The notes beneath the pieces were generated by a model that was not told the origin of the DNA, made no database searches, and was given only the letters and a program-made list of their open reading frames with translations. Source: Rhodosorus marinus CCMP1338 (taxonomy: Eukaryota; Plantae; Rhodophyta). Taken from it: 64,000 nucleotides of DNA. The translations under genes were made by a program, and so were the position numbers. The stretch is from positions 744,001-808,000 of the forward strand of contig JAMWBK010000001.1 in assembly GCA_029953675.1 (NCBI GenBank). Reading direction: 5' to 3'. Positions 7,749-52,598 of the stretch are shown here, one piece after another; positions within the stretch are counted from its first letter, which is position 1; each line of letters starts with the position of its first letter.

Positions 7749-7963
7749 CAAGTAAAGCCACAAGCACCTGATTTGTCAATACAAAGGGAGGCTTTTTACC
7801 TCCCAACCAATGCTATGACAGCCTGTCTAGTACAGAAGACTAGATTCATTGCATAAGCCTTTCACGCCGAGAGGAAATCATGATTCACGATATGGAGTGA
7901 AAGCTTGTCATACCGAGAAGCAATCATAATTCAAAGTCTGGACCGGAGATGATTGACTAAGAG

Positions 7964-8486
7964 TTGGCTACACGGTCAAGGTGGAATCGACACAGCCTAG
8001 TCACCCTCCGCAACCACCTCTACTCGTTGCATCGCAGATCTCCTGGTCTCGGACGCAGCCGCCAGACGCTCAGCATATGTGGAGCTCACTGTCGCTTGCC
8101 CCGTGTCCGGTACATACCCCCCCTTCTGCCGCTCTCCGCAGGGGGAGAGGCAGCTCCTGTGCTTCACCGCATGAACGAACGACGGTACGCCGAGAGATGG
8201 CCAGTCTTCACCGGGAAGAGAGCCGGTCTCACAGGTTCCAGCCTTTCATTGTGGAAACCTTTGGGCATCTGGAAAATTCAAGCTTGGAGTGGCGACGCAC
8301 GTGTTTTACCGAACCTCCTGAAGAATATCTGGTGGTCATCCGCCGTTTAAGTATCGCACTCTGGCGATATTCTAGGAACATGCTCGCCGAGGCGCGCCAC
8401 CGTCGCCTGGGCTCACATGATCTTCTTCCTAGCCCCTAGTTCCCCTTAACGTTTTGCGTAGCGCATCAGGCAATGTTAGTAAAACC
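7964..8486 (+). mobile_element. 5'-truncated, degenerate non-LTR retrotransposon (CRE/RLE-type endonuclease end), copy A
   Basis: Frames give RVGYTVKVES...ADLLVSDAAARRSAYVELTVACPVSG...RFQPFIVETFGHLE, matching the restriction-like endonuclease region. Co-linear with the inverted copy at 10110-10700. Confidence 0.7.
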
Positions 8487-8490
8487 ATAA

Positions 8491-8961
8491 CGGAGTGGTT
8501 ACGGAAATGTTTCGCTGAGCATCCTACCGAATACTTGGAACTCTTTTATGCCGTTTAAGTGTCTCTCCGCGGCGATATTCTAGCAGCATGCTTGCCAAGG
8601 CACGCCTTCGGCGCCTGGGTTTGCACGCTTCCCTACGTAGTTCGTAGTTCCTTTTCAGGCCTTGCGTAGCGCTTTAGGCTATGCTAAAAAAAAAGGAAAG
8701 CTTCGGTCACATGGAGAAGTCGGGTTTGGAGTGGTTGCGGAAATGTTCTACTGAGCATCCTGTTGAATACTTGGAACTTTTGCGGCGTTTAAGTCTCTCT
8801 CTCTCTCTCTCTCTGTGGCGATATTCGAGCAGCATGCTTGCCTAGGCACGCCATCGGCGCCTGGGTTTGCACGCTTCCCTACCTACTTCTTAGTTCCTTT
8901 TCACGCTTTGCGTAAGCGCTTTAGTCTATGCTAAGAGAACCCCGAAAAACCCCAGTAAAAC
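8491..8961 (+). mobile_element. Two further tandem 3'-end copies (B about 8491-8695, C about 8700-8935) of the same retroelement
   Basis: The block GGAGTGGTT.CGGAAATGTT...GAGCATCCT...TTGCGTAGCGCTTTAG.CTATGCTA occurs twice. Copy B ends in an A10 run, and copy C contains a (CT)10 expansion. Confidence 0.75.
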
Positions 8962-9788
8962 CGCATCGTAATATATTTCAATCTCCCAACGGTTTTTTTT
9001 CAAATTGTTATTGATTGAATGTAGCTAACAGAAAAAAAACAGTTGGGAAATTGAAATGCGTTTTAAAAAAGATGGGTGGTGTAGGGGGGTGTGACAAAGT
9101 GACTATGAAGATATTGTTGCGAAACGCGGGTGACTTGATCTCGAACCGTATTTCTAACCGAAGTGGACAAGAGCTTTGTTAGAATCTTTCGGGCACTATC
9201 TGATGAAACTTTGCGGTTCCAAAATCGTCGGAGAAAATAGGACTCGACACGAACAATTCCGCTTTCGTGAAACTCCTTCCCGACTAACCGCGTTCTATGC
9301 GATTCGATTGGTGAAACTCACACCACCAATACGCAATCTGCAGTGCCTCGCCATGCCTCTCGATTAATGTCCACGCGAATGAGCGTTTGCGCGTCCGCTT
9401 TGTGCTCAAGATGTGCAAGTAGTTTCGGTAGTGAAGTATTGGGCCGCTTGCCCGAGTCGTCCAAACCCTTCCACGGCGAACGCTACGTATTGGAAGTCGT
9501 TAAGGTCACCGATGGCATCCCGATGTTTGGCTCGTTTCCCCCCTCAGCGTTAGCTGCAGCATAACCAGTTTAATATGGGGCTCGAACGAGGAGATGGGCT
9601 CGCAGTGGGGATTCCACTTTGACGTCAATTACGTACTGCTTACCTGTGCGGTGATGACGAACGACAATGTCTGATCAAGACGACTACCCTCAAAAAACCC
9701 GAAAGGATATCTTGAAGGTTTCACCGCCGGAGGTTGACGCGCGAGTTTATCACGAATTCGGTTATGGCGCAGTCCAATTCCCGGCCGA

Positions 9789-9839
9789 AGTAGAACAGTG
9801 TAAACTGTTCTACTTAAGAACAGTTTACACTGTTCTACT
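9789..9839. repeat. Perfect 23-bp inverted repeat with 5-nt spacer; each arm is itself near-palindromic
   Basis: AGTAGAACAGTGTAAACTGTTCT-actta-AGAACAGTTTACACTGTTCTACT. Confidence 0.95.
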
Positions 9840-10109
9840 ACCCATCCGCAGCGTGGGGTTTGGCAAAGACTGTTCGTTCAGGAGTAGGGCGAAGACCAGG
9901 TATCGGGAGTCCCAAAAGGAGGCGTAAGCTGCAGCGGATTTCTTCGGTGGAGAGGACCTCAGATACCATGCTAGGAAGGTCACGAAGCCAGCACCGGCGC
10001 CAGCATCAGAAGCGGATCGGACGCGAGCGCGGGTGTGATCGTCAAGGGCAGAATTATCCACGATATCCTCAAATGCTCTACGGTTACTCTCCTGCGAGAG
10101 TATTTGTTG

Positions 10110-10895
10110 GTTTTCTAACGTAGCCTAATGTGCTACGAGACGTAAAAGGAAACTGGGGAGAAGGGCACGCAAGCCCAGGCGGCAGTGGCACGTCTCGGCG
10201 AGAATGTTGCTAATACCGCCAGAGAGCGACTTAAGACGGCGGGGGAGCACCAGATTTTCATCAGGATGTTCGGTGCAACACTTGCGCAGCCACTCCAAAC
10301 TTGACTTTTCCAAATGCCTAGAGCCTTCCACAATGAAAGTCTGGAACCTGTGACACGGGCCCTATTCCCGGGGAAGACTGGCCATCGTTCCTTCACACGC
10401 TGAAGTGCAGAAGCAGCTTGGCCGCCTGGGGAGAGCAGCAGATTGGAGATAGGTACCGGACACGGGGCAAGTGACAGCGAGGTCCACATGTGCTGCGCGT
10501 CTGGCAGCTGTGTCCGATACCAGGAGATCTGCAATGCAAGGAGCAGGAGTGGTTGCGGAGGGTGCTCGAGGCAGCGCCGATTCCACCTTGACCGTGTAGC
10601 CAACTCTGGTCAAGCGTTCGCTCAGGATGTATTTCAGGCACATGTATCTCTTCGTGCGATGACCTCCCATGCCCCATAGACGAGCCGCGGTGGTAGCGGA
10701 CAGTTGACAAGATTGCGTGAGCAGTTTTACTGGTTTTTACTAGCATAGCTTGAAGCGCTACGCAAGGCGTGGACTGTAAACAGTTTTACTGCATAGCGTG
10801 ATGCGCTACGCAAGACGTAAAAGACAACTAGGGACTAGGCAGAAGAGCATGCAAGTCCAGGCAGCGGTGGCCCGGATCGGCGAGCATGTTGCGCA
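10110..10895 (-). mobile_element. Inverted nest of the same retroelement: about 590-bp copy D (zinc-knuckle tail plus RLE) and short 3'-end copies E and F
   Basis: ORF 10362-10670 reads GGHRTKRYMCLKYILSERLTRVGYTVKVE...ADLLVSDTAARRAAHVDLAVTCP, then GQAASALQRVKERW and FIVEGSRHLEKSSLEWLRK. The 3' ends GCGTAGCGC..GCTATGC(T)AGTAAAAC repeat at 10724-10810. Confidence 0.75.
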
Positions 10896-27363: not shown

Positions 27364-27559
27364 GAGGATCAGGGCGGACTTCATATAACAAACATTGCTG
27401 GTATATATGGCGACGCACAAAGGAAGGTGGCTTGCAACATGTGCGGGAAGCAGGGACAGACATCTGTTTGCTGCATGTCCCTGCGGGAAGCAGTACCTTC
27501 CTATCTGCGTTGCCATGTATACCAGCAACGTTTGTTGTATGAAGTACAACCTGATCCTC
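27364..27559. repeat. 196-nt imperfect hairpin: 65-bp ungapped arms (56/65 complementary) plus an inner 9-bp stem
   Basis: 27364-27428 is the reverse complement of 27495-27559 with 9 mismatches; inner GCAGGGACA (27450) pairs with TGTCCCTGC (27476). Confidence 0.93.
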
Positions 27560-27654
27560 CTTCGGGATCATTGAAACCTCTTGGGCCATCTGGGTCTTTA
27601 TAGGATGTTTGTGCAAAACATTGAGGTTAAGAAGGGACTCCAGTCGTGGTCGTG

Positions 27655-27892
27655 GGTGAGTGTTCATCTCCTCTACGACTTTCGTAGCTTTCCGGAGGAT
27701 CTCCAAGAGCACGGACTCGTCTACATATTTTACAAAATCGATCACAGCCTATGTTTCGATACCAACACGTGAGCGTGAGTGGTGTCCGCCTCCTCCAATG
27801 ATACAGGTTGAGGGCCTCGCGCTTCTAATCGCGTCAGAAACAACGGAACAATGGGAACAAGCGCTAACAACAGATGCGCGGACACTTACGTC
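27655..27892. pseudogene. mnmE: Two degenerate mnmE fragments in back-to-back orientation
   Basis: 27767-27655 (-) matches about 30957-31072 (IDF..VDES.LLEIL.KAT.VVEEM, with the intron end TGGTATCGAAACATAG). 27803-27892 (+) matches 30753-30842. Confidence 0.9.
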
Positions 27893-28224
27893 TCTTACTC
27901 GCTCACTATTTCCACTCGGAAATTCGGTCCACCTTTACTTCAAACTGCCCCAAACAGCCTAGCCCGCTGGCCAGGATCTTTCTGGGCCGTTGGCAACTAC
28001 TTGCGGGAGCACGAAACGAACCCAAAGAGGTAGTAGTAAAGTTCGAAATACAAAAAGTTCTCACTGCTTTCGCTCCTTTCTTGACCTGTTCAGCCGCTCA
28101 AGGCTCTCCTCTCGACTCTGTCGATCTTTCCCAACCCTCTTTGTTCCCTTCGGACGGTATATGGCCACTTCTACCCCCTCCCAAGGCCGTTAAGCAACGT
28201 TTCTGGCCTAGGTCGTCGTTCAAC

Positions 28225-29129
28225 ATGGAAGGCTCTTCATCCGTTTGTGGGTTCGCACTGTCATCTCTATCAGACCCAACTACTCGAACTGCTTACACAA
28301 GTCTGGCTTCAACTTTGATGAGGTCCTTTAAGACTGCAGACAGTGCTTTTGGAAAACTTTCTTTTTCAGAGAGCTTGGAAAGGGAGTGTCGTGGGAGTTC
28401 GATGTTCGTATTCTTATTTGAAGTACACGGTACAAGCATTTGAATGGTTCCATAATCAATATGAACTTGCCCAATCTGTTGACCTTATCGCGGATTGTGA
28501 TGTGCGTTATCTTCGTTGCATTGCTTTCCGTCCCGCAAGGGTATGCCAAGTGGCAGCAGCGGGCGTGGGAGGTGAGCTCGAATAGTGAAGCATTCTAGGA
28601 GGTGCACTGATGCCTCGACCATGATGGACACTGACTGAGTCCGTGTTGTCGTTTCCTTCCGTTTCAGGTTGGCTACGTTCTTGCCGTCCTGGCCGGCTTC
28701 ACAGATTTTCTGGATGGGCACTTCGCAAGGAAATTGAACCTGGTGACGGAGTTCGGGAAATTCCTCGATCCTCTCTCCGACAAGATCTTTGCCGTCGCTG
28801 GGTTTGTAGTCCTGACAGACAAAGGGATCATCCCGTGCTGGATAACAGTTGTCCTTCTCAGCCGCGAATTTCTGGTTCAGGGTCTCCGGCAGATGGCAAC
28901 CGGCCACGGAAAGACCATCCCCGTCTCCTACTTGGGCAAGGTGAAGACGACTGTGCAGATGCTCTGCCTCGCTCTGGGTGGTGCCATGATGGTGGACTGG
29001 GTACCGGGTGACCTTTGGGGAGCTCGAATATTGTGGGACAGTCTCCTCGGCTTGACGGTTGGAATTACTGCGTACACCTGCGCTCAATATTTGCGCGTGG
29101 CGTCAGATATTGTTATGAAAGATACGTAA
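28225..29129 (+). CDS. pgsA: CDP-diacylglycerol-glycerol-3-phosphate 3-phosphatidyltransferase (PGP synthase) with probable transit peptide; core starts at 28461
   Basis: MNLPNLLTLSRI...|VGYVLAVLAGFTDFLDGHFARKLNLVTEFGKFLDPLSDK carries the CDP-alcohol phosphotransferase motif DxxDGxxAR...GxxxDxxxD, followed by SREFLVQGLR and LGKVKTTVQM. The Ser-rich upstream ORF from 28225 needs a short intron to join. Confidence 0.92.
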
Positions 29130-30060: not shown

Positions 30061-30187
30061 ATCATCTTCCTCACCAGAGGCCCGACGATTCCTCTACTGA
30101 TCAGCGGTGAAGATGTTTGGATGGATCGATGAAAGGGATGAAGGCAAGTCTTGGTACTCTACATGACTGAGGAAGAGACAATTAAGA

Positions 30188-32559
30188 ATGCGGATGTATG
30201 GATTTTGCAGTGGTGCACTATGGAAGGGAGGCAAGACGAAGATTCGCCCGTCGCATGTGACGATGTCGATGTACTCGGATACGATTTATGCCTTGTCGAC
30301 CGGGGTAGGCCGTGCTGGAGTTGCCGTTGTCCGAGTGAGCGGAGCGGATGCAGGAACGTGTCTTCTGCAGCTTTGCTCCTTGGAGAAGCTCCCTGCGGCG
30401 AGAAAAGCCACCTTGAGAAAAGTCATCCATCCCAAGGCAAAAGAAGTTGTGGACGAGGCGCTTGTTCTTTACTTTCCACAGCCGAGGAGTTTCACTGGTG
30501 AAGATGTAGCTGAGCTGCATGTACATGGATCGTATGCAGTCATTAAGTCTACCCTAGAGGCGCTGAGCTTAGTAGATCCAGAACAAGGCAGAAGAATTCG
30601 TCCAGCGGAGCGCGGTGAATTCACGCGCAGAGCTTTCGAAAACGGCAGAATGGATCTAACCGAAGTATGCACGCCGAATCGAAATAGAAAGCCCTACTGC
30701 ACTTCATATAGACCGGCAGGGGCTCAAGCAAGAATCTGTCAACTTCTGTGCAACAGGTTGAAGGCCTCGCCGATCTGATCGCTTCAGAAACTACGGAACA
30801 ACGCAAGCAAGCGCTGAAGCAAATGTCCGGACACTTACGTCAGTACTATGAGAGCTGGAGAGAACAGCTTAAGTCTTGCTTAGCCTTTGCTGAGGTACTT
30901 AGACTGCAGCACAAGGCCCACCTGAGCACGTGACGCGAGTCTTGAATAACCACTCATGCGCTGGTATCGAAACATAGGCGGTGATCGATTTTGGAGAAGA
31001 TGTAGACGAGTCTGCGCTCTTGGAGATCCTGCCGAAAGCTACGGAGGTCGTAGAGGAGATGAAGACTCATTTGAAAGACGGTAGAAGGGGAGAAATCGTA
31101 CGATCAGGTGTGAAACTGGCGATTATAGGTCCACCAAATGCAGGTGAGAGCAATGACTTAGCCGACATTCAATGTGTTTGCAGCTGGAAACACTGAGGAT
31201 CTATGGACCAGATCCTTCCAGAATTCTTGTCAGGGTGGGAGGGAAATCTGTCGCGAAATGGCAGGCCGAAAAGCTCGGGCTGAGCATGGCGCAGGGCAAC
31301 CTACGTAGAGGCTACCAAATCCTAAGGGTTGTGTTGTTTATGAGAATAGTTGTGTCCAACAAGGTGTTGACAAAGCTGCTGAACTTGAACTGGTCTTTTT
31401 CATGGCGATAGGAAAGAGCTCCTTGTTGAACGAACTCGCAAGGAGACCAGCAGCGATAGTTTCACCGATAGCCGGAACGACTAGGGACGTTGTTCAGGTG
31501 AATCTCGACCTGGGCGGGTAAGGCACCGTCGACCCAGATTCTACTTGGAAGCATACTTGGACAGTGCGCGTGCTGTTCTGTCTATCCGGTGGAAGAAAGC
31601 TGTGCAAAAGCCATGGCTTGTCGAATGCTGATGTTCAGTTATGTTCTGGTGGCTCAGGATGTCAGTAGTTGTGAGTGACACAGCAGGAATCCGAACGCAG
31701 ACGGACGATGTGATTGAGCAGGAGGGCATTCGGCGGGCCTGGGCCACAGCGGAGGAGGCAGATATTGTTCTGTGCGTAGTCGATGCTTCTGAGCAGAGCA
31801 ACGACGGAAACCAGTGGTATGCGCGCTTCGGTCATAGCGAAAACTCGCCAAGTGCTTTTACACATGCAAGAAGCTATGAAACCTGAGCGGATCCCGCAAA
31901 CCGTCTTCGTCTTCTCCTCCCTTTGAAAATTAAGGATCGCGAATGACACCGTGAACACCCGAAAGATCATTGTTGCAAATAAGGCAGATCTCGTAGGAGA
32001 ACAGAAGGGACTGATATCAAGGAGTCTACAGGACGTTCCCGTGAGATATATTTCATGCAAGACAGGTTAGCACCAGTTACAAGGTTTTCTGAAGCTAAGC
32101 TGGTTGTACCTATCAACTAACACGACGCTTGTATGGTCGCCTGGGGGCAACACGTGTAGGAGATGGTATTCAGCCACTGTTGGATGAACTGGAAAAGATT
32201 ATCAAGGACGCGATTGTTGGTGACACGAAGGGGAAGGAAATGCCTCTGATAACAAGACAGAGACATAGACAGCACGTGCAAGGTACTTGTGGCAAATCGG
32301 TATTACCTTTGAGCGAGCTCATATGTCTGATTAGCTGTAACGATTACCTGCTTGTCGTTGTTTATTGAACTTTTAAGCATGTATTACCGCACTAGAGACT
32401 TTTCTTGAAGGGTGTGAGGCCAACGGCGGTACCTTGCCCCTGGACATCGCGACTGAAGAGCTCAGAATCGCGACAAAGGAGATCGGACTTGTGACTGGTA
32501 TCGTTCATGTTGAGGAAGTTTTGGATGTGGTGTTTTCTGAATTCTGCATCGGGAAGTAG
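30188..32559 (+). CDS. mnmE: tRNA modification GTPase MnmE/TrmE/GTPBP3, multi-exon
   Basis: [62 protein letters not shown]1 GPPNAG|KSSLLN, GTTRDVV, DTAGIR, NKAD and C-terminal [12 protein letters not shown]. Confidence 0.96.
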
Positions 32560-32943
32560 GGCGGGAAGTAGGAGATGCATTGCTCTTGTGTGGTAACCGT
32601 CGTTATTCTTTTGAACCTTGAAGAAGGAATCCACGTCGAGTATGATACTCTATCTGTCTTTTTGCTCTTGTTGTAAATTGAGCTATTTTTATTCGTCACC
32701 TCTCCTGTTCAATTAGTGGGAATGCTAGTTATATATTCTACGGTAGCCTAATGTACAGCATTTCGCTTCTTGTCGTCAAGTACGCTGGGTGTCTAGCGCA
32801 TTCCTCACTAGCAGACAATTATCCCAATAGCAACGGGCTGCTTCGACTGCGGCAAGCATGAAACCGACAAACCGGTGGTGAAAACTAGAGCATGGTTCTA
32901 GTTGTAGTCGTCCGCCAGGGCAGATTCCTGGCTTGTTTCTTCC

Positions 32944-35900
32944 TCATCCCAAGTCCACTCCCATCCTCTCTTTGACCCGGCTTACAATGTCATAATTAGT
33001 CGGACTACCAGCAACTTTCAGAGCAATTTCACACATACGTAAGAACGCCGGATCCGGGGTGTGGGACTCGATCGACAGAAAATCCTCTGCGATCTCCATG
33101 GCGTCCTCAAATTTCTGGAACAGCATCAGGCTTCCCATTAGCGTCTTGTACACATTCAAAGACTTCGCTATATCCCTCTTCCCCATTTCCGAGTACAAGC
33201 TTATGGCACGATCAACTTGCTTCCTTTTCGTGTACTCGTGTAGAAGTCGGACATACATACCAACCTTTGGCTTTTCGATTGATCGCAAACTCTGCCTTGC
33301 ATCATCTAATTCCCCATCCTTCAATTGTAGTTCAAATTCCACATGGTCGACTTTTCCCTTCGGAAGGCGATCATGAAACGTCTTCACCATTTCTTTCACC
33401 CCAAACGGATCAGGACTTCTTAACGCCTCGTTAATCCAATTCACAATTTGCTCCTTCTCGGCATACTCGCCTAGTTGGAGCAATTCATATGCGCTGCGAA
33501 GATCGCAAATGTTCTCGGCGTTTGACAGCTGCTTAAGAAACTTGTGCGCTTCTCGCTCTCCATTATCCAAGCTGAAACTTGCGTATAGCGCACAGAACGC
33601 TCTGAGTGATGGAAATATCTTGGCGCGCACCATATGCGAGAAGACACGCTGCACCTCCTCCCCGGACAATCCATGGGTTTCCAACACTTTCACATAAAGC
33701 TCTTGGTCAAAAGCTATTCCTATCTTGCGACTTTTCTCTAGCAAGGCAGCAGCTTCGTCACCGTCACTGGATTCCACCAGCAGAGCTACGGATTGCGCCA
33801 GCGGATGCAAACCTTTGCTCTCCATTTCGGATAGTATTCGCGCAGCAGCTTCTGGCTGACCCTGCATTATGCGCATTCTTATGACTTGGTGGTACACCTG
33901 CGGTGAGAGACCACGAACAGCTTTCGTTCCAGATAAGACCAGTTCCGCTTTTTCAACCTTGCGAGCATCCAAAGCGACCTTCATGGCACTCGCAAAAGTT
34001 TCTTGAAGCCCACCAATCTTTTTCCTCTGCCAGGTCGGGAAATGGCTCCCGAGGAGAGCCAGGTCACTAACCGCCTGAAATCTGAAAGAAAGGGTTACAC
34101 CGTCATAGGAACCTGTACGTATGGACTCCTTCAGAAACGCCTTGAATACTCCAGGCCTCTCAGCTTTCTTTCTATGATGAGCAGTCACGAGAAAGTTTCG
34201 GAGCATAATGTGCATAGAGGACGTGGGGGAGCCCCGACCTCTGAGACTCTGAGGAAGGCTTTCAATTTCCCCCCCAAAACGCAGAAAGCAATCAACAAGA
34301 GCTTCATACGCTTGCCGACTTAATCCAGTTTCGGCATCACTCCTCTTAGAGATCAGGGCGTCCACCGTCCCGGCTAAGTCCCCTCCAGTTGCTAGCAAGC
34401 GTACAATATCATCCAAACTTTCTACATCCAACTTTCGCTTGTGCTCCTTCCATTTCTTGAAGAGGTCTGCACCCGAAACGAAGTCATCCTTGTGCACGCA
34501 GGAGTTGAACAAAGATAGAACTATTCGCCTGCTGGGATAGACGTGAGCTTTGTTTAAAATGGACGCCACCCTTGCGATCATATCGATATCGTGGGTTCGC
34601 TCGCAAGTGGTAAAGATTGGCTCAAGTTCCTCAAGGGTTGCGACATGCTCAAGATGGCGAAGCTTCTTCATCGCGTACTCAATCATGTTCTTGTTCTTCC
34701 TTATGATACTCGCCTTTAGCAAATCCGTGTACATACTGTTCGTTGGTGCTAAACCCTTCCGCGAGACTTCGGTGAAGACGTTTGGTACACTTTCAAGTCT
34801 TCCGGAATCCGTGAGGGCCTTGGTCACAAGCGCATACGTCCTCAGATTCGGTTTACACCTGCTGTTTGCAGACAGCATAGTGCTGTACATTGCGAGAACT
34901 TCATTAACCGGGACCTTTTTGCTGTTTTTCAATAAGTCCTCCATCTCAGAATTCCTATCCTCAACGGTTGGAGTACTCCAAAATGCTCCTGTCAGTTCTT
35001 GCTGAGAGAACCTGAAGTATTGTTGCCATCTATCCGGCGCATTTTCTAGGATTGTTTCTGCGGACGGCCAATCTACAGTGCTTCGACGCTTCTTCGCGTG
35101 CTTGTCCTTGAACTTTTTCGCCGCCTCATGGTCCCCGAAGTAGGATAGTACGGAGTAATTCAGCTCAGCCCACCGCTTCTGTTGTCCCTCGCTCAACGCG
35201 TATAACCGCTGTTTGGACACTGACCTGAAAATCATTTTGCAAGTATCCAAGTCGCCTGCTTTGGAGAGTGCTGCGATGGTCATTACCGCGACTGGGTACT
35301 GGATCCGTGTGCTTCTCGCCAGCGCCTCTTTCACCCAAAATTTCGCGTTTTCAATATCCATAACGGCGACGTATTGAGCAATAATCGAGTTTGCAACGAC
35401 CTCGTGCTTGTGATCTGATACTTCCTTCTGCGCTTTCTCAAATATCATCTGTACTTTGTCATGCAGTCCATTGTCAATGTACACTGACAGCATGGCTACG
35501 TACAGGTCGTCCCTCTCCGAGACAATCCTACTTTCGAAGACGCCCTCCGCTTCTGCGACTTGCCCTGCTTCTCCTAGTGACTTGATAAGCATAGAGTGAA
35601 GGACGTCGCTCTTCACTGCCTTCCTGCCCAGCTTCGCCATCATTTGCTTCATATCGTTGACACTTGGAACTGTACCAAAAACTTTCCAGAGGTCATGCAA
35701 CCGGACCTTTTGATCACTGACGTTCGGGAGTGAGCTGAGCATGACCTCTGTTCGATCGAACTTTTGCCCCCGTCCTTCTTTGGCCTTGAGCACCTTCTCG
35801 AGCAGTGCCAACTCGTTCAAATAGACGTGAATGGAACCTAAATCAACTACCGCCTGTGAACGAGCAGAGGCGCCGGTTAAAGCTCTCATAAGCAGAGATA

Positions 35901-36339
35901 AATTCGCCTTCTTGACGGTATTGTCTGCGGTTGAAAGCACGTTCACGCTAATGGGCTCTGCTGGCCCCTTCAGGCTATCAATATTCTTGCCTTCCCATAC
36001 ATCGCCGCTAAGCAGACCTCCCCGTTCCTCTGGAAATGATGTCTTCTGGATAACATTGTCCGCGTTTTTCTGCTCAAGAGCGGTTCTCCCAACGTTCAGG
36101 ATATTATCTTTAGAGTCCAGCGACATGCACCCTGATTGACCTACTCTCCCACTGTTTAACGCACTTATAGGGTGGGATTCTTTTCCATGAACATCCTCAT
36201 CTGAACCGTCTATGTCCGCTTCCTTTGAAGTACGTAGTTGCTGAGATGCCAAAGCATTTCCGTCAGACAGACTTGAAAGCCCGCGATATGAACGAGATAA
36301 ACGCTTTAGAAATCTCGTATGATACTGGTATAAAGCCAT
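32944..36339 (-). CDS. Large intronless PPR protein (1131 aa), likely organelle-targeted
   Basis: PPR-like repeats TYALVTKALTDSGRLESVPNVFTEVSRKGLAPT, VYHQVIRMRIMQGQPEAAARILSEMESKGLHPL and MYVRLLHEYTKRKQVDRAISLYSEMGKRDIAKS; Arg/Ser-rich N-terminus. Confidence 0.85.
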   Translation of the reverse strand: MALYQYHTRFLKRLSRSYRGLSSLSDGNALASQQLRTSKEADIDGSDEDVHGKESHPISALNSGRVGQSGCMSLDSKDNILNVGRTALEQKNADNVIQKTSFPEERGGLLSGDVWEGKNIDSLKGPAEPISVNVLSTADNTVKKANLSLLMRALTGASARSQAVVDLGSIHVYLNELALLEKVLKAKEGRGQKFDRTEVMLSSLPNVSDQKVRLHDLWKVFGTVPSVNDMKQMMAKLGRKAVKSDVLHSMLIKSLGEAGQVAEAEGVFESRIVSERDDLYVAMLSVYIDNGLHDKVQMIFEKAQKEVSDHKHEVVANSIIAQYVAVMDIENAKFWVKEALARSTRIQYPVAVMTIAALSKAGDLDTCKMIFRSVSKQRLYALSEGQQKRWAELNYSVLSYFGDHEAAKKFKDKHAKKRRSTVDWPSAETILENAPDRWQQYFRFSQQELTGAFWSTPTVEDRNSEMEDLLKNSKKVPVNEVLAMYSTMLSANSRCKPNLRTYALVTKALTDSGRLESVPNVFTEVSRKGLAPTNSMYTDLLKASIIRKNKNMIEYAMKKLRHLEHVATLEELEPIFTTCERTHDIDMIARVASILNKAHVYPSRRIVLSLFNSCVHKDDFVSGADLFKKWKEHKRKLDVESLDDIVRLLATGGDLAGTVDALISKRSDAETGLSRQAYEALVDCFLRFGGEIESLPQSLRGRGSPTSSMHIMLRNFLVTAHHRKKAERPGVFKAFLKESIRTGSYDGVTLSFRFQAVSDLALLGSHFPTWQRKKIGGLQETFASAMKVALDARKVEKAELVLSGTKAVRGLSPQVYHQVIRMRIMQGQPEAAARILSEMESKGLHPLAQSVALLVESSDGDEAAALLEKSRKIGIAFDQELYVKVLETHGLSGEEVQRVFSHMVRAKIFPSLRAFCALYASFSLDNGEREAHKFLKQLSNAENICDLRSAYELLQLGEYAEKEQIVNWINEALRSPDPFGVKEMVKTFHDRLPKGKVDHVEFELQLKDGELDDARQSLRSIEKPKVGMYVRLLHEYTKRKQVDRAISLYSEMGKRDIAKSLNVYKTLMGSLMLFQKFEDAMEIAEDFLSIESHTPDPAFLRMCEIALKVAGSPTNYDIVSRVKERMGVDLG

Positions 36340-37349
36340 ACCAGCCTTTTTAGAGTTCCTAGGACACCTTAAGGAGCGCAGGGCCTAGAAAATAGCGAGC
36401 CCGGTGTTTATGCATCCCATTCAAGGACGCCCTTCCATAACAATTCTATCCCGCCTGCAGCCTACAGCAGCATTAAATTCATCAGCTTCTCTACTCCTGT
36501 TCTGTTCGAATGTGGATCCCAAAACGCCTCGAGGGGTAGCGTCGCCTCTGGAGCTCTCAGCTCCTTTCTGCGCGGAAACGAGCCCCTCATCCGCCGAGCA
36601 GAAGAAGCTACTCAGAACCGACACCCCTTTTCCAGGTCATCTATGCGGAAGGTCTCATAGGAAGACTAGGTATTCTCCTCTCTAACCAGTCGCAGTCCAA
36701 TCCCAGCTCCTTACCATCACGTCTACACTTCCCCACCGTCCCACTCTCTTGCAAGTCCAGAAAATCACTCCACCACATTGGAAATTCCTCCTTCCTGATG
36801 AGAAAAACAAAGTACTTATCTGGTCTTGACTGGTGTTCCCGTTGCAACCTGGTAAAATGGCAATTTGACACAGGCCAAAACGACGGATTCCACGCACGCT
36901 GCTAAGCAATGACGACCGTGGGGATGAGGAGGAGGAGGAAAAGTTCTTCATGTAGGTCAGATCATCTACGAAGAGACCATATCAAGAAGATCCTTAGCAC
37001 TGTGGTATTATAGTAGTTACCCCATTCCGAACACAACAGCGTCTGCTCAGAAGTAAACCAACACATGACGTTTCTTCAGAGGAAACGCCCACTCAGCGGC
37101 GGTCGGTCCCGATGAACACTTCCTGGTGGGGTCATCCAAAATTATACTAATAAAAACAGGTACATCAACGTTCCTGAGTATGATTGGTAAATTTATTAGA
37201 TTAAGGGCGCTAATAACTAATTAATACAGTAGATTAACTAGGATAAGGCTTTAAGATTTTTAATTGGTCAAGAAAAGAGTTAAGGGATAATACATTGCTA
37301 ATTACTGGTCGATTGGGGAGGAGTGGTTCGGTTGCCTGTTGCCTTAGAT

Positions 37350-48331: not shown

Positions 48332-50909
48332 GCCATATTCATATTACGATACTAATTTCAACGGTTTTGCCCGAAATTGTGCCCTATCTGCAAGTCAATT
48401 CGTCGATTCCAACCGGGCTGCTCAACTATTGATGCCTTATGCAAGCCCTATGGCCCTATGCCAAGGTGTTCTTCGGTGAACTCTAGGAGCAGGTGACATG
48501 TTGTGAAATGGATGGGATAGAGTACGAGCTTGTAAAACGCTTCTGCTGGATGGTTAAGGGAGTAAGAACACTGAATATGGTCGAACAAGGGTGCTATGGC
48601 GGAGGTGTGGTTGAAGGGCATCCGTCTGCGGTTTCGAACCTTACGTCTTAGCTATTGTTTATCACGCACCCCTTGATCAAGCGAAGAGTTCTTCGTGTTT
48701 AGGGAGCTGAGATGTACTGTGATTGTTCAACTCGTTCATTGTTGCAGTCGGTTGTAACCAGGAGAGTTGAGGTCGAGAGCCTCCCCGGAGATGTTGGATG
48801 CGGCATCTTTTTCTTGGCTTGTTTATGTTTGGTTTTGCGGCTTACCACACCCGTTTACTACGCGTTGAGACCCTTTCTGTTGCGGAGCACCTCTTCTACT
48901 CCCACTTTTTGTCTTAGTTTTCATGCTCTCAGGCTTGTTGTCTGAATATACAATGATGAGGTTGTACTAATACAAGTATGTTTTAGTGAACATCGACTTT
49001 CTACCGCAGTCCTTTGGTTCCTCGAATTATTTCAGGACCTGCCCGATCTCCATTTATTGCTTGCTTTGGCATGTGCAAAACTATGAGAAGCGGATGCGGA
49101 AGGAGTGCCAAGTATCTCTTCGGTTTCTCCGAGCTTGGTTTTCTCCTCTAAGATCGTGTCCGCGATATCAGGATCAAGATGTGCTGAAGTATCGAACTCA
49201 TCAGCACCTGGAACAGAATTTTGTTTTCCTTTCCTGATCCGTTCTGGGAGCTGCTAAAACCATTGTTTCCCCGGTGCGCATTGACTCTACCTCAAAGTTG
49301 CAATCGTGTATGCAGTCGAATGCTCATCATCATCCGTTTATTCAGAGCCTAAGTACCCAGAGGAAAAGCAAGCGTTCCGTGAATTTCTGCTCAAAGCTTT
49401 TCCGCCAAGCTCTCTTCCCGAAGCAAGTCGGTCTCACAGACTATATCCCACTGTGAATTTTAATTTAATAATTCATTATAGCGCTAGACCGTTGATTTCT
49501 CTTCATAATACGAATGTCCTTCAAAATAGGGAATTTTATAAACAAAAACAACACAAATATAGGGCATGAGTTAAGAATATATCTACCACATAGGGCATGG
49601 AAATGGCACTAAAAAATGGCCCTGCGGCCCTATGAAAATGGTTCAGAATCGAGGGGTACCCCTCGAGTTCTTTTTCATTATGGGGATCCCTATCGAAACT
49701 TACAAAGGGCTATTTCACTGCCCTATGTTGTAGATATATTCTTAATTCATGCCCTATGTTTGTGTTGTTTTTGTTTATAAAATTCCGTATTTTGAAGGAC
49801 ATTCGTATTATGAAGAGAAATCAACTTCCTATCGCGATAATGAATTATTAAATTAAAATTCACAATAACATACGTAGTCTGACTGCATACACGACTGCAA
49901 CTATTGAGGTAGACTTTGAAAACAAATTCTGTACCAGATTTTGATGAGCTCGATACTTCAGCACATATTGATCCCAGAACGGAGCAGGAAGGGAAGACTT
50001 GAAAACAAATTCTGTTCCAGAAGATGCTGAGTTCGATACTTCAGTACATCTTGATCCTGATATCTCGGACACGATCTTAGAGGAGAAAACCAAGCTCGGA
50101 GAAACCGAAGAGATACTTAGCACTCCTTCCGTATCCGCTTCTCAAAGTTTTGCACGGGCCGAAGCAAGCAATAAATGGAGATCGGGCAGGTCCTGAAATA
50201 ATTCGAGGAATCAAAGGACTGCAGTAGAAAGTCGATGTTCACTGGAACATACTTCTAGTAGTACAACCTCATCATTGTATATTCAGACAACAAGCCTGAG
50301 AGCATGATAACTAAGACAAAAAGTGGGAGTAGAAGAGGTGCTCCGCCACAGAAGGGTCTCTACGCGTGGTCAACGGGTGTGGTAAGCCACAAAACCAAAC
50401 ATAAACAAGCCAAGAAAAACATGCCGTAGCCAGCTTCTCCGGGGAAGCTCTCGACCTCAACTCTCCTGGTTACAATCGAGTGCAACAATGAACGAGTTGA
50501 ACTATCACAGTACATCTCAGCTCCCTAAACACGAGGAGCTCTTCGCTTGATCAAGTGGTGCATGATAAAACAATAGCTAAAACGTAAGGTTCGAAACCAC
50601 AGACGAATGTACTTCAACCACACCTCCGCCATAGCACCCTTGTTCGACCATGTTCAGTGTTCTTACTCCCTTAACCATCCAGCAGAAGCGTTTTACACGC
50701 TCGCACCCTATCCCATCCATTTCACAACTTCTCATCTGCTCCTAGAGTTTGCACCGAAGAACACCTTGGCATAGGGCCATAGGGCTTGCATAGGGTTTAC
50801 TATAGGCCATAAATGTTGAGCAAACCGGTTGGAATCGACGAATTGACCTGCAGATAGGGCACAATTTCGGGCAAAACCGTTGAAATTAGTATCGTAATAT
50901 GAATAGGGC
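48332..50909. repeat. Palindrome 1: about 2.58-kb fold-back (unit copy 1 +, copy 2 -) centred on a perfect 18-bp palindrome at 49649-49666
   Basis: 48332-49320 is the reverse complement of about 49875-50909 (66/71 identical in one checked segment). 49452-49610 mirrors 49705-49864. The centre is TCGAGGGGTACCCCTCGA. Confidence 0.95.
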
Positions 50910-50920
50910 AGATAGGGCCG

Positions 50921-52550
50921 ACCCTATGCATAGAGCGATACTAATTTCAGTGGCTTTGCCCCTTGAATTATGCCCTATGCATGCTCGATGGCCCTATGTC
51001 AAGGTGTGCTTCATACCTCTATGAGCAGCTGAGGAGTTATGAAATGGATGGGATAGAGATCGCGCTTGTAAGATCGATTCTGTTGGGATGGTTAAGGGAG
51101 TATGAACACTGAATATGGTCGAACAAGGGTGCTATGGCGGAGGTGTGGTTGAAGTACATTCCGTCTGCGATTTCGAATCAGACGTTTTAATTATTTTTTT
51201 ATATCATCCACCACTTGATCAAGCGATGGAGCTGTAAGTGTTTAGAGATGTACCGTGCTTGTTGAATGCGTTCCTTGTTGGGAGTGCTATGTATCTCTTT
51301 GATTTATCCCAGCATAGCTTTCTCCTCTAGGATCGTGTCCGAGATATCAGGATCAGGATGTGCTGAAGTGTCGAGCTCGATATAGTTGATATAATTAATA
51401 TAATTGATTGATGTAATTGATAGAATTGATCGAGATGGTTAGGTGTGGCGAGCGACGACATGATGAGAGAACAGCGTCGGTGACTAACGCCCTAAGCTAC
51501 ATTCACGATTGCAAGATTGAGGTAGAGTCAATGCAAACTGGGAAAGCAACGGGTTCACCAGTTCCCAGAACGGAACCAGGAAAGGAAGACCTGAAACCAA
51601 AGTCTGTACCAGAAGATGTTGATGAGCTCGATACTTCAGCATATCTTGATCCTGATATCTCGGCACTATCCTGGAGGTCAAAGCAATAGAGATACATAGC
51701 GCTGCTTTGCATCCACGTCTCAAAGTCTTGCAGAGCCCAAAGGAAGCTATAGAGAGGATCGAACACATCCTGAAAGTATTCGAGGAATCAAAGGGCTAGC
51801 TACGTAGAAAAGTCAATGTTCACTAAAAAAAAGAAGCATGCGTGTATCAATACAACCTCATTAATGTGTATTCAGAGAGAACAAGCCTGAGAGCATGAAA
51901 ACCAAGACAGAAAGTGGGAGTAGAAGAGACGCTCCGCAACAGAAAGCAGTGAAAAAATGATCTCACCGCAATGTAAACGGGTGTGGTAAGTCACAAACCA
52001 AACATGAACACGCCAAGAAAAAAGACGCCGCAGTCAGCTTCTCCGGAGAAGCCCTCAACCTCAACTCTCTTGGCTACCACCGACTGCAACAATGAACGCG
52101 TTCAACAAGCACAGTACATCTCAGCGTTCTAAACACTTAAGAGCTAGCTCTTCCGCTTGATCAACTGGTGCATAATAGAAAAAATAGTTAAAACGTCTGA
52201 TTCAAAGCCGCAGACGGATGTACTTCAACCACACCTCCGCCATAGCACTTTTGTTCGACCATATGCAGTGTCCAAACTCCCCTAACCATCCGAACAGAAT
52301 CGATCTTACAAGCTCGAACCCTATCCCATCCATTTCACAACTCCTCAGCTTGCTCATGGAGGTTCACCACCGAAGCACACCTTGACATAGGGCCATTGGG
52401 CTCGCATAGGCCCCCTCGCATAGGGCTACTATGGGGCAGAAAAAGTAGAGCGCGCAGGTTGGAATCGACGATTTGACCATTGGATAGGGCACAATTAAGA
52501 GGCAAAACCGTTGAAACTAGTAAAGGAATATGCATAGGGCAGATAGGGCC
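50921..52550. repeat. Palindrome 2: about 1.63-kb fold-back of the same unit (internally deleted copy 3 +, copy 4 -)
   Basis: 50921-51390 repeats the start of copy 1 (e.g. GAACACTGAATATGGTCGAACAAGGGTGCTATGGCGGAGGTGTGGTTGAAG). 51505-52550 is an inverted full copy ending ATAGGGCAGATAGGGCC, as copy 2 does. Confidence 0.93.
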
Positions 52551-52562
52551 TGCCCGATTACT

Positions 52563-52598
52563 ACCCTACTAATAGTACTATTGTACTATTAGTAGGGT
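52563..52598. repeat. Perfect 16-bp hairpin with 4-nt loop at the right edge of the array
   Basis: ACCCTACTAATAGTAC-tatt-GTACTATTAGTAGGGT. Confidence 0.95.

Follow-up and report, generated by a model that had tools for sequence, protein, structure and literature searches.

An imperfect palindrome in an intergenic spacer of the red alga Rhodosorus marinus: a probable template-switch scar with the geometry of a hairpin-RNA precursor

An imperfect palindrome of 196 nt (27364-27559) lies in intergenic nuclear DNA of the red alga Rhodosorus marinus CCMP1338, and it raises the question of whether such a structure is a nascent small-RNA gene, a decayed mobile element or a scar of DNA copying. It was analysed within a window of 64 kb, the whole stretch of DNA under study and the frame for all coordinates given here, which amounts to 0.2% of the R. 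marinus genome. The CCMP1338 assembly comprises 31 Mb and 8392 genes, with 15% repeats and abundant nuclear inserts of mitochondrial DNA, or NUMTs (Lee et al. 2023; PMC10250338). The palindrome falls within a 2.4-kb spacer that runs from a minus-strand PPR-like gene, which reaches to 26020, to pgsA (from about 28461), a CDP-alcohol phosphatidyltransferase gene located upstream of mnmE. Its parts are as follows.

27364-27428: left arm, 65 nt (inverted-repeat search and mismatch list)
27429-27494: asymmetric centre, 66 nt, containing an inner 9-bp stem and a direct repeat (sequence, repeat search and folds)
27495-27559: right arm, the reverse complement of the left arm at 56/65 positions (inverted-repeat search and mismatch list)
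27552-27570: mini-hairpin TGATCC-TCCTTCG-GGATCA at the right boundary, which repeats part of the arm terminus a third time (terminator-like match and sequence)

The two 65-nt arms are ungapped, 86% complementary (56/65) and separated by a gap of 66 nt, exactly as the initial annotation had described them. Their nine mismatches consist of five transitions and four transversions, the latter disrupting pairing on both strands. The central 40 bp (about 27378-27417) hold four differences, at 27386, 27394, 27406 and 27412, all of which are transitions, and three of these four would give G:U pairs on the plus strand. These counts, to which the same annotation had drawn attention, were verified; the G:U share carries no signal, because all nine mismatches taken together give G:U pairs at three positions on the plus strand versus two on the minus strand. 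The extra inner stem and the duplicated sequence that had also been reported were both located in the centre. The 9-bp stem pairs GCAGGGACA (27450-27458) with TGTCCCTGC (27476-27484) and is present in the minus-strand minimum free energy (MFE) structure, and the 12-nt direct repeat TGCGGGAAGCAG occupies 27442-27453 and 27482-27493, its second copy stopping one base before the right arm. This repeat is part of a longer imperfect one, TTGCaaCATGTgC..GGGAAGCAG, at 27431-27453 and 27467-27493.

A palindrome of this quality cannot have arisen by chance: arms this complementary have a binomial probability of about 5e-25 per placement, and about 1e-17 are expected in the whole window. It is also sharply bounded, as neither an extension of the palindrome nor terminal inverted repeats rose above shuffles in the flanks. 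A nuclear insert of mitochondrial minicircle DNA, or another foreign fragment, would suit a species in which NUMTs are reported to be unusually abundant and mostly non-coding (PMC10250338), but the palindrome bears no positive sign of such a source, and its GC content (49.5%) is like that of the nuclear surroundings (47%). We regard this origin as barely probable at all.

The DNA beside the palindrome bears more directly on its origin, as it contains two scraps of the gene mnmE, whose intact source lies 3 kb downstream.

27560-27656: spacer of 97 bp between the palindrome and the mnmE scraps, with no match to mnmE or to the rest of the window
27657-27773, minus strand: mnmE scrap 1, a copy of 30953-31069 at 88% identity (blastn, alignment and exon model)
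27803-27892, plus strand: mnmE scrap 2, a copy of 30753-30841, the start of exon 2, at 81% identity (blastn and alignment)
30188-32559, plus strand: mnmE, the intact source gene, with 8 exons and 7 GT-AG introns (exon model and NCBI comparison)

Antisense mnmE DNA had been placed about 95 bp from the palindrome in the initial annotation, and the copy does begin there, at 27657. Scrap 1 consists of the last 25 nt of intron 2 and the first 92 nt of exon 3, and a plus-strand transcript would consequently hold 117 nt antisense to mnmE exon 3. Because intron sequence is included, the scraps must be copies made at the DNA level and not retrocopies. They are inverted relative to each other and join at a quasi-palindrome, a point at which the start of exon 2, when reverse-complemented, is similar to part of intron 2. 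Divergence between scraps and source is 12-19%, and scrap-specific change amounts to 11% (20 changes in about 180 nt). Relative to the split between strains, the scrap has seven variant sites in common with the window's own gene and three with L001, a transcriptome contig from another Rhodosorus strain. In protein terms, a continuation of this mnmE pseudocopy into the palindrome arms is tempting, the spacing from EEMxTH to 'AG' being 45 versus 46 residues. We rejected this candidate, as DNA alignment of the arms to spliced or genomic mnmE was no better than alignment of shuffles.

Two smaller observations concern the nearby genes pgsA and mnmE. An ORF of 189 aa on the plus strand (27874-28443) starts inside the exon-2 scrap, at a Met homologous to that of KQM-SGH, and runs to the first pgsA exon; it was considered as a hidden 5' (presequence) exon of pgsA and set aside, as its codon usage is non-coding (-0.13 bits/codon), and it is probably a chance ORF. 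The mnmE model itself differs from NCBI NDN08_005236 (Rhodosorus marinus) only in one alternative 3' splice site. For the last intron (32283-32395), NDN08_005236 uses a site 18 nt upstream of the one chosen here, which adds ACITAL; both choices keep the frame.

The oppositely oriented mnmE fragments from 3 kb away, joined at a quasi-palindrome, are direct evidence of template-switch or patchwork copying at this site. Our preferred explanation, to which we assign a probability of roughly 0.6, is that the palindrome is a neutral fold-back or template-switch structural scar, probably formed together with the mnmE scraps in one patchwork insertion. During replication or repair, the polymerase would have changed templates and made a reversed copy of about 65 bp of neighbouring sequence, through fold-back or snap-back synthesis of the MMBIR/FoSTeS type, and the two scrambled mnmE pieces would have been placed 97 bp away in the PPR-pgsA spacer by the same insertion. 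The left arm and the knuckle-like centre described below may represent the template and the right arm the copy. Such an element would have no selected function, its capacity to form hairpin RNA being a by-product.

Templated patchwork insertions and fold-back inversions of this kind arise from template switching during replication or repair, including MMBIR/FoSTeS, snap-back synthesis and the filler DNA found at repaired breaks. The locus resembles them in several respects. Firstly, an inverted copy lies beside its presumed template, the two being separated by a short asymmetric centre of 66 nt. Secondly, a small inner inverted repeat (9 bp) and a direct repeat (12 nt) mark the zone in which the switch would have occurred. 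Finally, further templated fragments lie nearby, namely the two mnmE pieces, copied from a few kilobases away in opposite orientations and with one junction at a quasi-palindrome. Unlike a fresh insertion, the structure records an old event (about 14% divergence), and exact microhomologies are no longer legible.

One event or one fragile site may have made all of these pieces. Were the palindrome and the scraps independent, their chance co-occurrence within 100 bp would be an estimated 1-3%, roughly, in this window. One age followed by neutral decay is compatible with the data, because the arms differ by 14%, comparable to the 12-19% of the adjacent scraps. A single event is what we infer from these figures; it counts against it that neither the 97-bp spacer nor the arms have a template match in the window. 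Other palindromes and inverted duplications share the same 64 kb, so that palindrome formation is recurrent in this genome and hairpin-forming inverted duplication is not rare in it. As it stands, the hairpin is an ordinary imperfect palindrome of a known kind, and its main value is as a well-preserved case of patchwork template-switch copying in a red-algal genome, in which a fold-back adjoins gene scraps copied over a distance of 3 kb.

A scar may still be capable of forming RNA structure, and the predicted folds are strong. The plus strand has an MFE of -120.7 kcal/mol (z = -15.0) and the minus strand one of -112.8 kcal/mol (z = -14.4); no shuffle equals either value, and the two strands fold about equally well. 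The hairpin still dominates when folded in a 396-nt context, with 100 nt of flank per side. With an MFE index (MFEI) of 1.24 and a single stable foldback of less than 300 nt whose mismatches are few and mostly symmetric, the structure has the form of a plant-type miRNA or hpRNA precursor, and the folding check proposed in the initial annotation thus came out in favour of precursor-like geometry. Whichever strand was transcribed, an RNA spanning the locus would fold into a long and almost perfect hairpin, which could be diced if the alga has RNAi. A foldback of this kind would be diced into siRNAs, not into one single miRNA.

According to a model reportedly put forward by Allen et al. in 2004, young plant MIR and hpRNA genes are born by inverted duplication of a fragment of their target gene. 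The palindrome is like these genes in being an inverted duplication found at a single locus in the window, with coding-like arms that lie between genes and fold back almost perfectly over about 200 nt. It is unlike them in that no parent or target was found in the window or the protein libraries and there is no strand-specific G:U bias. A young hairpin-RNA or proto-miRNA locus would require that Pol II transcribe one strand, that the roughly 85-bp stem be diced, and that an arm-homologous gene or mnmE be targeted; as part of the same reading, mnmE could be reached through the adjacent 117-nt antisense scrap on a plus-strand transcript. The precursor geometry fits this proposal, as does the inverted duplication, a classic birth route of plant MIR genes, and the 2.4-kb spacer, long for so compact a genome, might conceal a transcription unit that is missing from the annotation. 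Elsewhere among mesophilic red algae, miRNAs have been reported on the basis of small-RNA data, and DCL and AGO homologues are described in one of them, Asparagopsis (PMC12026948).

Several results count against this proposal. No near-complement to the 21-mers of the hairpin, with up to four mismatches, was found beyond chance in the 64-kb window, and neither the window (at four or fewer mismatches per 21-mer) nor the protein libraries yielded a donor or target. Searches for tRNA and Rfam elements returned none: no Rfam 15 match reached gathering scores, and the hairpin itself had no match even at E-values up to 5. JGI contigs including a Rhodosorus transcriptome, scanned with peptides from the hairpin ORF, gave no transcript relative, which is weak evidence against transcription in a comparison where the strain is 10-15% diverged and seeding needs conserved peptides. 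Apart from these results, an orthologous spacer was sought in other strains. The L001 contig covers only mnmE and the downstream PPR gene, at 86-91% nucleotide identity to the window. A pgsA-seeded scan of metagenome contigs for the orthologous locus retrieved only bacterial relatives of about 40% identity, and exact look-ups of a 1131-aa PPR ORF and of P0001 gave no match to the locus in another strain. Our literature search found no report on small RNAs, Dicer or Argonaute in Rhodosorus. On the side of the sequence itself, G:U pairs are not in excess over disruptive mismatches, the strands show no asymmetry and the arms have diverged at a neutral level. Taken together, these observations make a proto-miRNA locus unlikely, though it retains a real minority chance. 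If the hairpin were diced, it would show a hairpin small-RNA gene in the act of being born, in a red-algal class, the stylonematophyceans, for which we found no small-RNA literature, as well as a concrete locus for testing whether RNAi works in Rhodosorus.

A more specific functional proposal is that the hairpin might be the point at which Dicer enters a small-RNA locus specific to this lineage. On a plus-strand transcript the foldback would precede the 117 nt antisense to mnmE exon 3, and siRNAs triggered by the hairpin, possibly transitive, could tune mnmE 3 kb downstream. The gene product affected would be a mitochondrial tRNA-modification GTPase, in an alga whose mitochondrial genome is split into 13 minicircles. 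We give this scheme very little probability.

The arms can also be compared with each other for traces of selection. Read in the frame quoted in the initial annotation, their differences are distributed over codon positions 1, 2 and 3 as 4/3/2, and all eight changed codons (8/8) are non-synonymous. Because there is no strand or codon-position bias, the two folds are about equally strong and the arm divergence matches that of the scraps, neutral decay since formation is the natural conclusion. The divergence looks neutral, and these comparisons do not support post-duplication selection on either a reading frame or the RNA structure.

Whether the arms were once coding is a separate matter. They had been said to translate like coding DNA, and the quoted translation is correct, but the coding support is weak. 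With codon-usage scoring trained on exons of the window itself, and with presumed non-coding segments of 63 nt for comparison, the arms scored +0.23 and +0.27 bits/codon in the quoted frame, near the median of real exons; this is also about the 90th percentile of non-coding DNA, 9-13% of the non-coding segments scoring as high. ORFs crossing the hairpin scored -0.07 to +0.01 bits/codon versus +0.08 to +0.27 for real exons, and, with at least four of the six frames open through the arms, a lack of stops carries little information. Similarly, an inverted duplication of a gene fragment had been proposed: the inverted duplication is real, while its donor gene was found neither in the window nor in the protein libraries. 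The blastn search of an arm for a donor or target, suggested at the same time, gave no match elsewhere in the 64-kb window, and tblastn likewise gave none. Pfam gave no match to the local ORFs or to any of the 60 pieces from the six-frame translation of the spacer, and Pfam and the protein libraries provided no protein family, homologue or annotated ORF for the hairpin. Searching 1.84 billion representatives with the plus-strand ORF (phmmer) found no credible relative; the sole match, P0121, is a bacterial repeat protein whose score was summed over eight repeats, and it was discarded as spurious. A 144-aa minus-strand ORF had no match in a word-indexed search, and ten local ORFs had no exact match in a collection of 15 billion proteins.

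One motif nevertheless stands out from this background.

27433-27474, plus strand: CCHC zinc-knuckle-like string CNMCGKQGQTSVCC, with Gln for His, in the ORF leaving the left arm

The string reads C-x2-C-x4-Q-x4-C in place of the canonical C-x2-C-x4-H-x4-C. No other string of this kind occurs in any of the six frames across the 64 kb, and 20 shuffles produced none. Of the 13 matches in a PDB sequence search, 10 were to retroviral nucleocapsid or Gag chains whose alignments cover the string (E 0.08-4.6). These features hint that the left arm and the left part of the centre could derive from an older, once-coding copy of a retroelement Gag or host CCHC gene, in a suggestion that is post hoc and below significance. 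The locus might accordingly be compared with Mu killer of maize, an inverted partial transposon duplication that makes a silencing hairpin RNA. Both are single-locus inverted duplications, here of a possibly TE-derived coding fragment. Unlike Mu killer, the present locus owes its putative TE origin to a degenerate zinc-knuckle-like string, and the window contains no parent element.

An inverted duplication of a Gag or host CCHC fragment, whose hairpin RNA could silence the parent element, would account for the uniqueness of the string, the nucleocapsid matches and an arm codon usage near that of real exons. Against it, the zinc-binding His is replaced by Gln, and none of the 60 six-frame spacer pieces matches the Pfam zf-CCHC, gag or RT models. 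The top nucleocapsid-knuckle matches have E-values of 0.08-0.8, of which even the best, 0.08, is not significant; no retroelement is seen in the window, and the motif was spotted post hoc. We accord this origin little probability. The mildly coding-like arms and centre do argue against the template-switch scar, as a simple local fold-back leaves them unexplained unless its template was already a gene or TE fragment.

A mobile element could also have supplied the inverted arms directly. As in MITEs and foldback transposons, the structure is small and dominated by two inverted arms, and its sharp ends, the adjoining gene scraps (as seen with fragment-capturing elements), the 15% repeat content of the genome (PMC10250338) and several further inverted-repeat structures in the window would all be consistent with a decayed, non-autonomous foldback or MITE-like transposon inserted in the spacer, possibly one carrying gene fragments (Pack-type). 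The expected traces of insertion are absent, however. There is no target-site duplication, the flanks GGAGAGTAGT and CTTCGGGATC having no repeat in common; no second copy and no similarity to other repeats occur in the 64 kb, or 0.2% of the genome; no terminal inverted repeats enclose the hairpin together with the scraps; the GC content is not AT-rich; and the scanned contig collection holds no relatives. The MITE alternative raised in the initial annotation was thus not borne out within the 64 kb, and a transposon of this kind, perhaps from a low-copy family, is an unlikely source.

The region around the locus contains further features of possible interest for RNA biology. In the other Rhodosorus strain, positions 1-5950 of L001 (JGI 3300017118) correspond to 30117-36746 of the window and place the convergent mnmE and PPR genes on one transcriptome contig, which keeps mnmE intron 7. 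This arrangement suggests overlapping 3' ends or read-through of the mnmE/PPR pair as a natural source of dsRNA. The PPR gene of the pair corresponds in the window to an intronless ORF of 1131 aa on the minus strand (32944-36339), which had no homologue in the word-indexed search. Its L001 counterpart is a gene of 1143 aa with faint PPR matches and 86% nucleotide identity, and the missing homologue looks like a limitation of the index, not a true absence.

Inverted repeats of other sizes are present in the same window. A repeat cluster at 7960-10890 contains inverted copies at 7960-8487 and 10108-10607 (78%) and diverged tandem copies at 8253-8941, and its ORFs are non-coding-looking only. Small palindromes occur at 9789-9839, 50854-50978 and 52563-52598, the first of which is nested and built on GTAGAACAGT...ACTGTTCTAC. 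The largest structure is a nested palindrome of about 2.6 kb (48332-50927), with 940-nt arms at 48332-49249 and 49972-50909 that are 91% identical, an inner palindrome at 49437-49881, and, extending to 52558 in both orientations, further copies of 76-83%. The interval 48332-52558 contains no ORF as long as 100 aa and is a candidate for a hairpin RNA, or a repeat cluster, far larger than the 196-nt hairpin.
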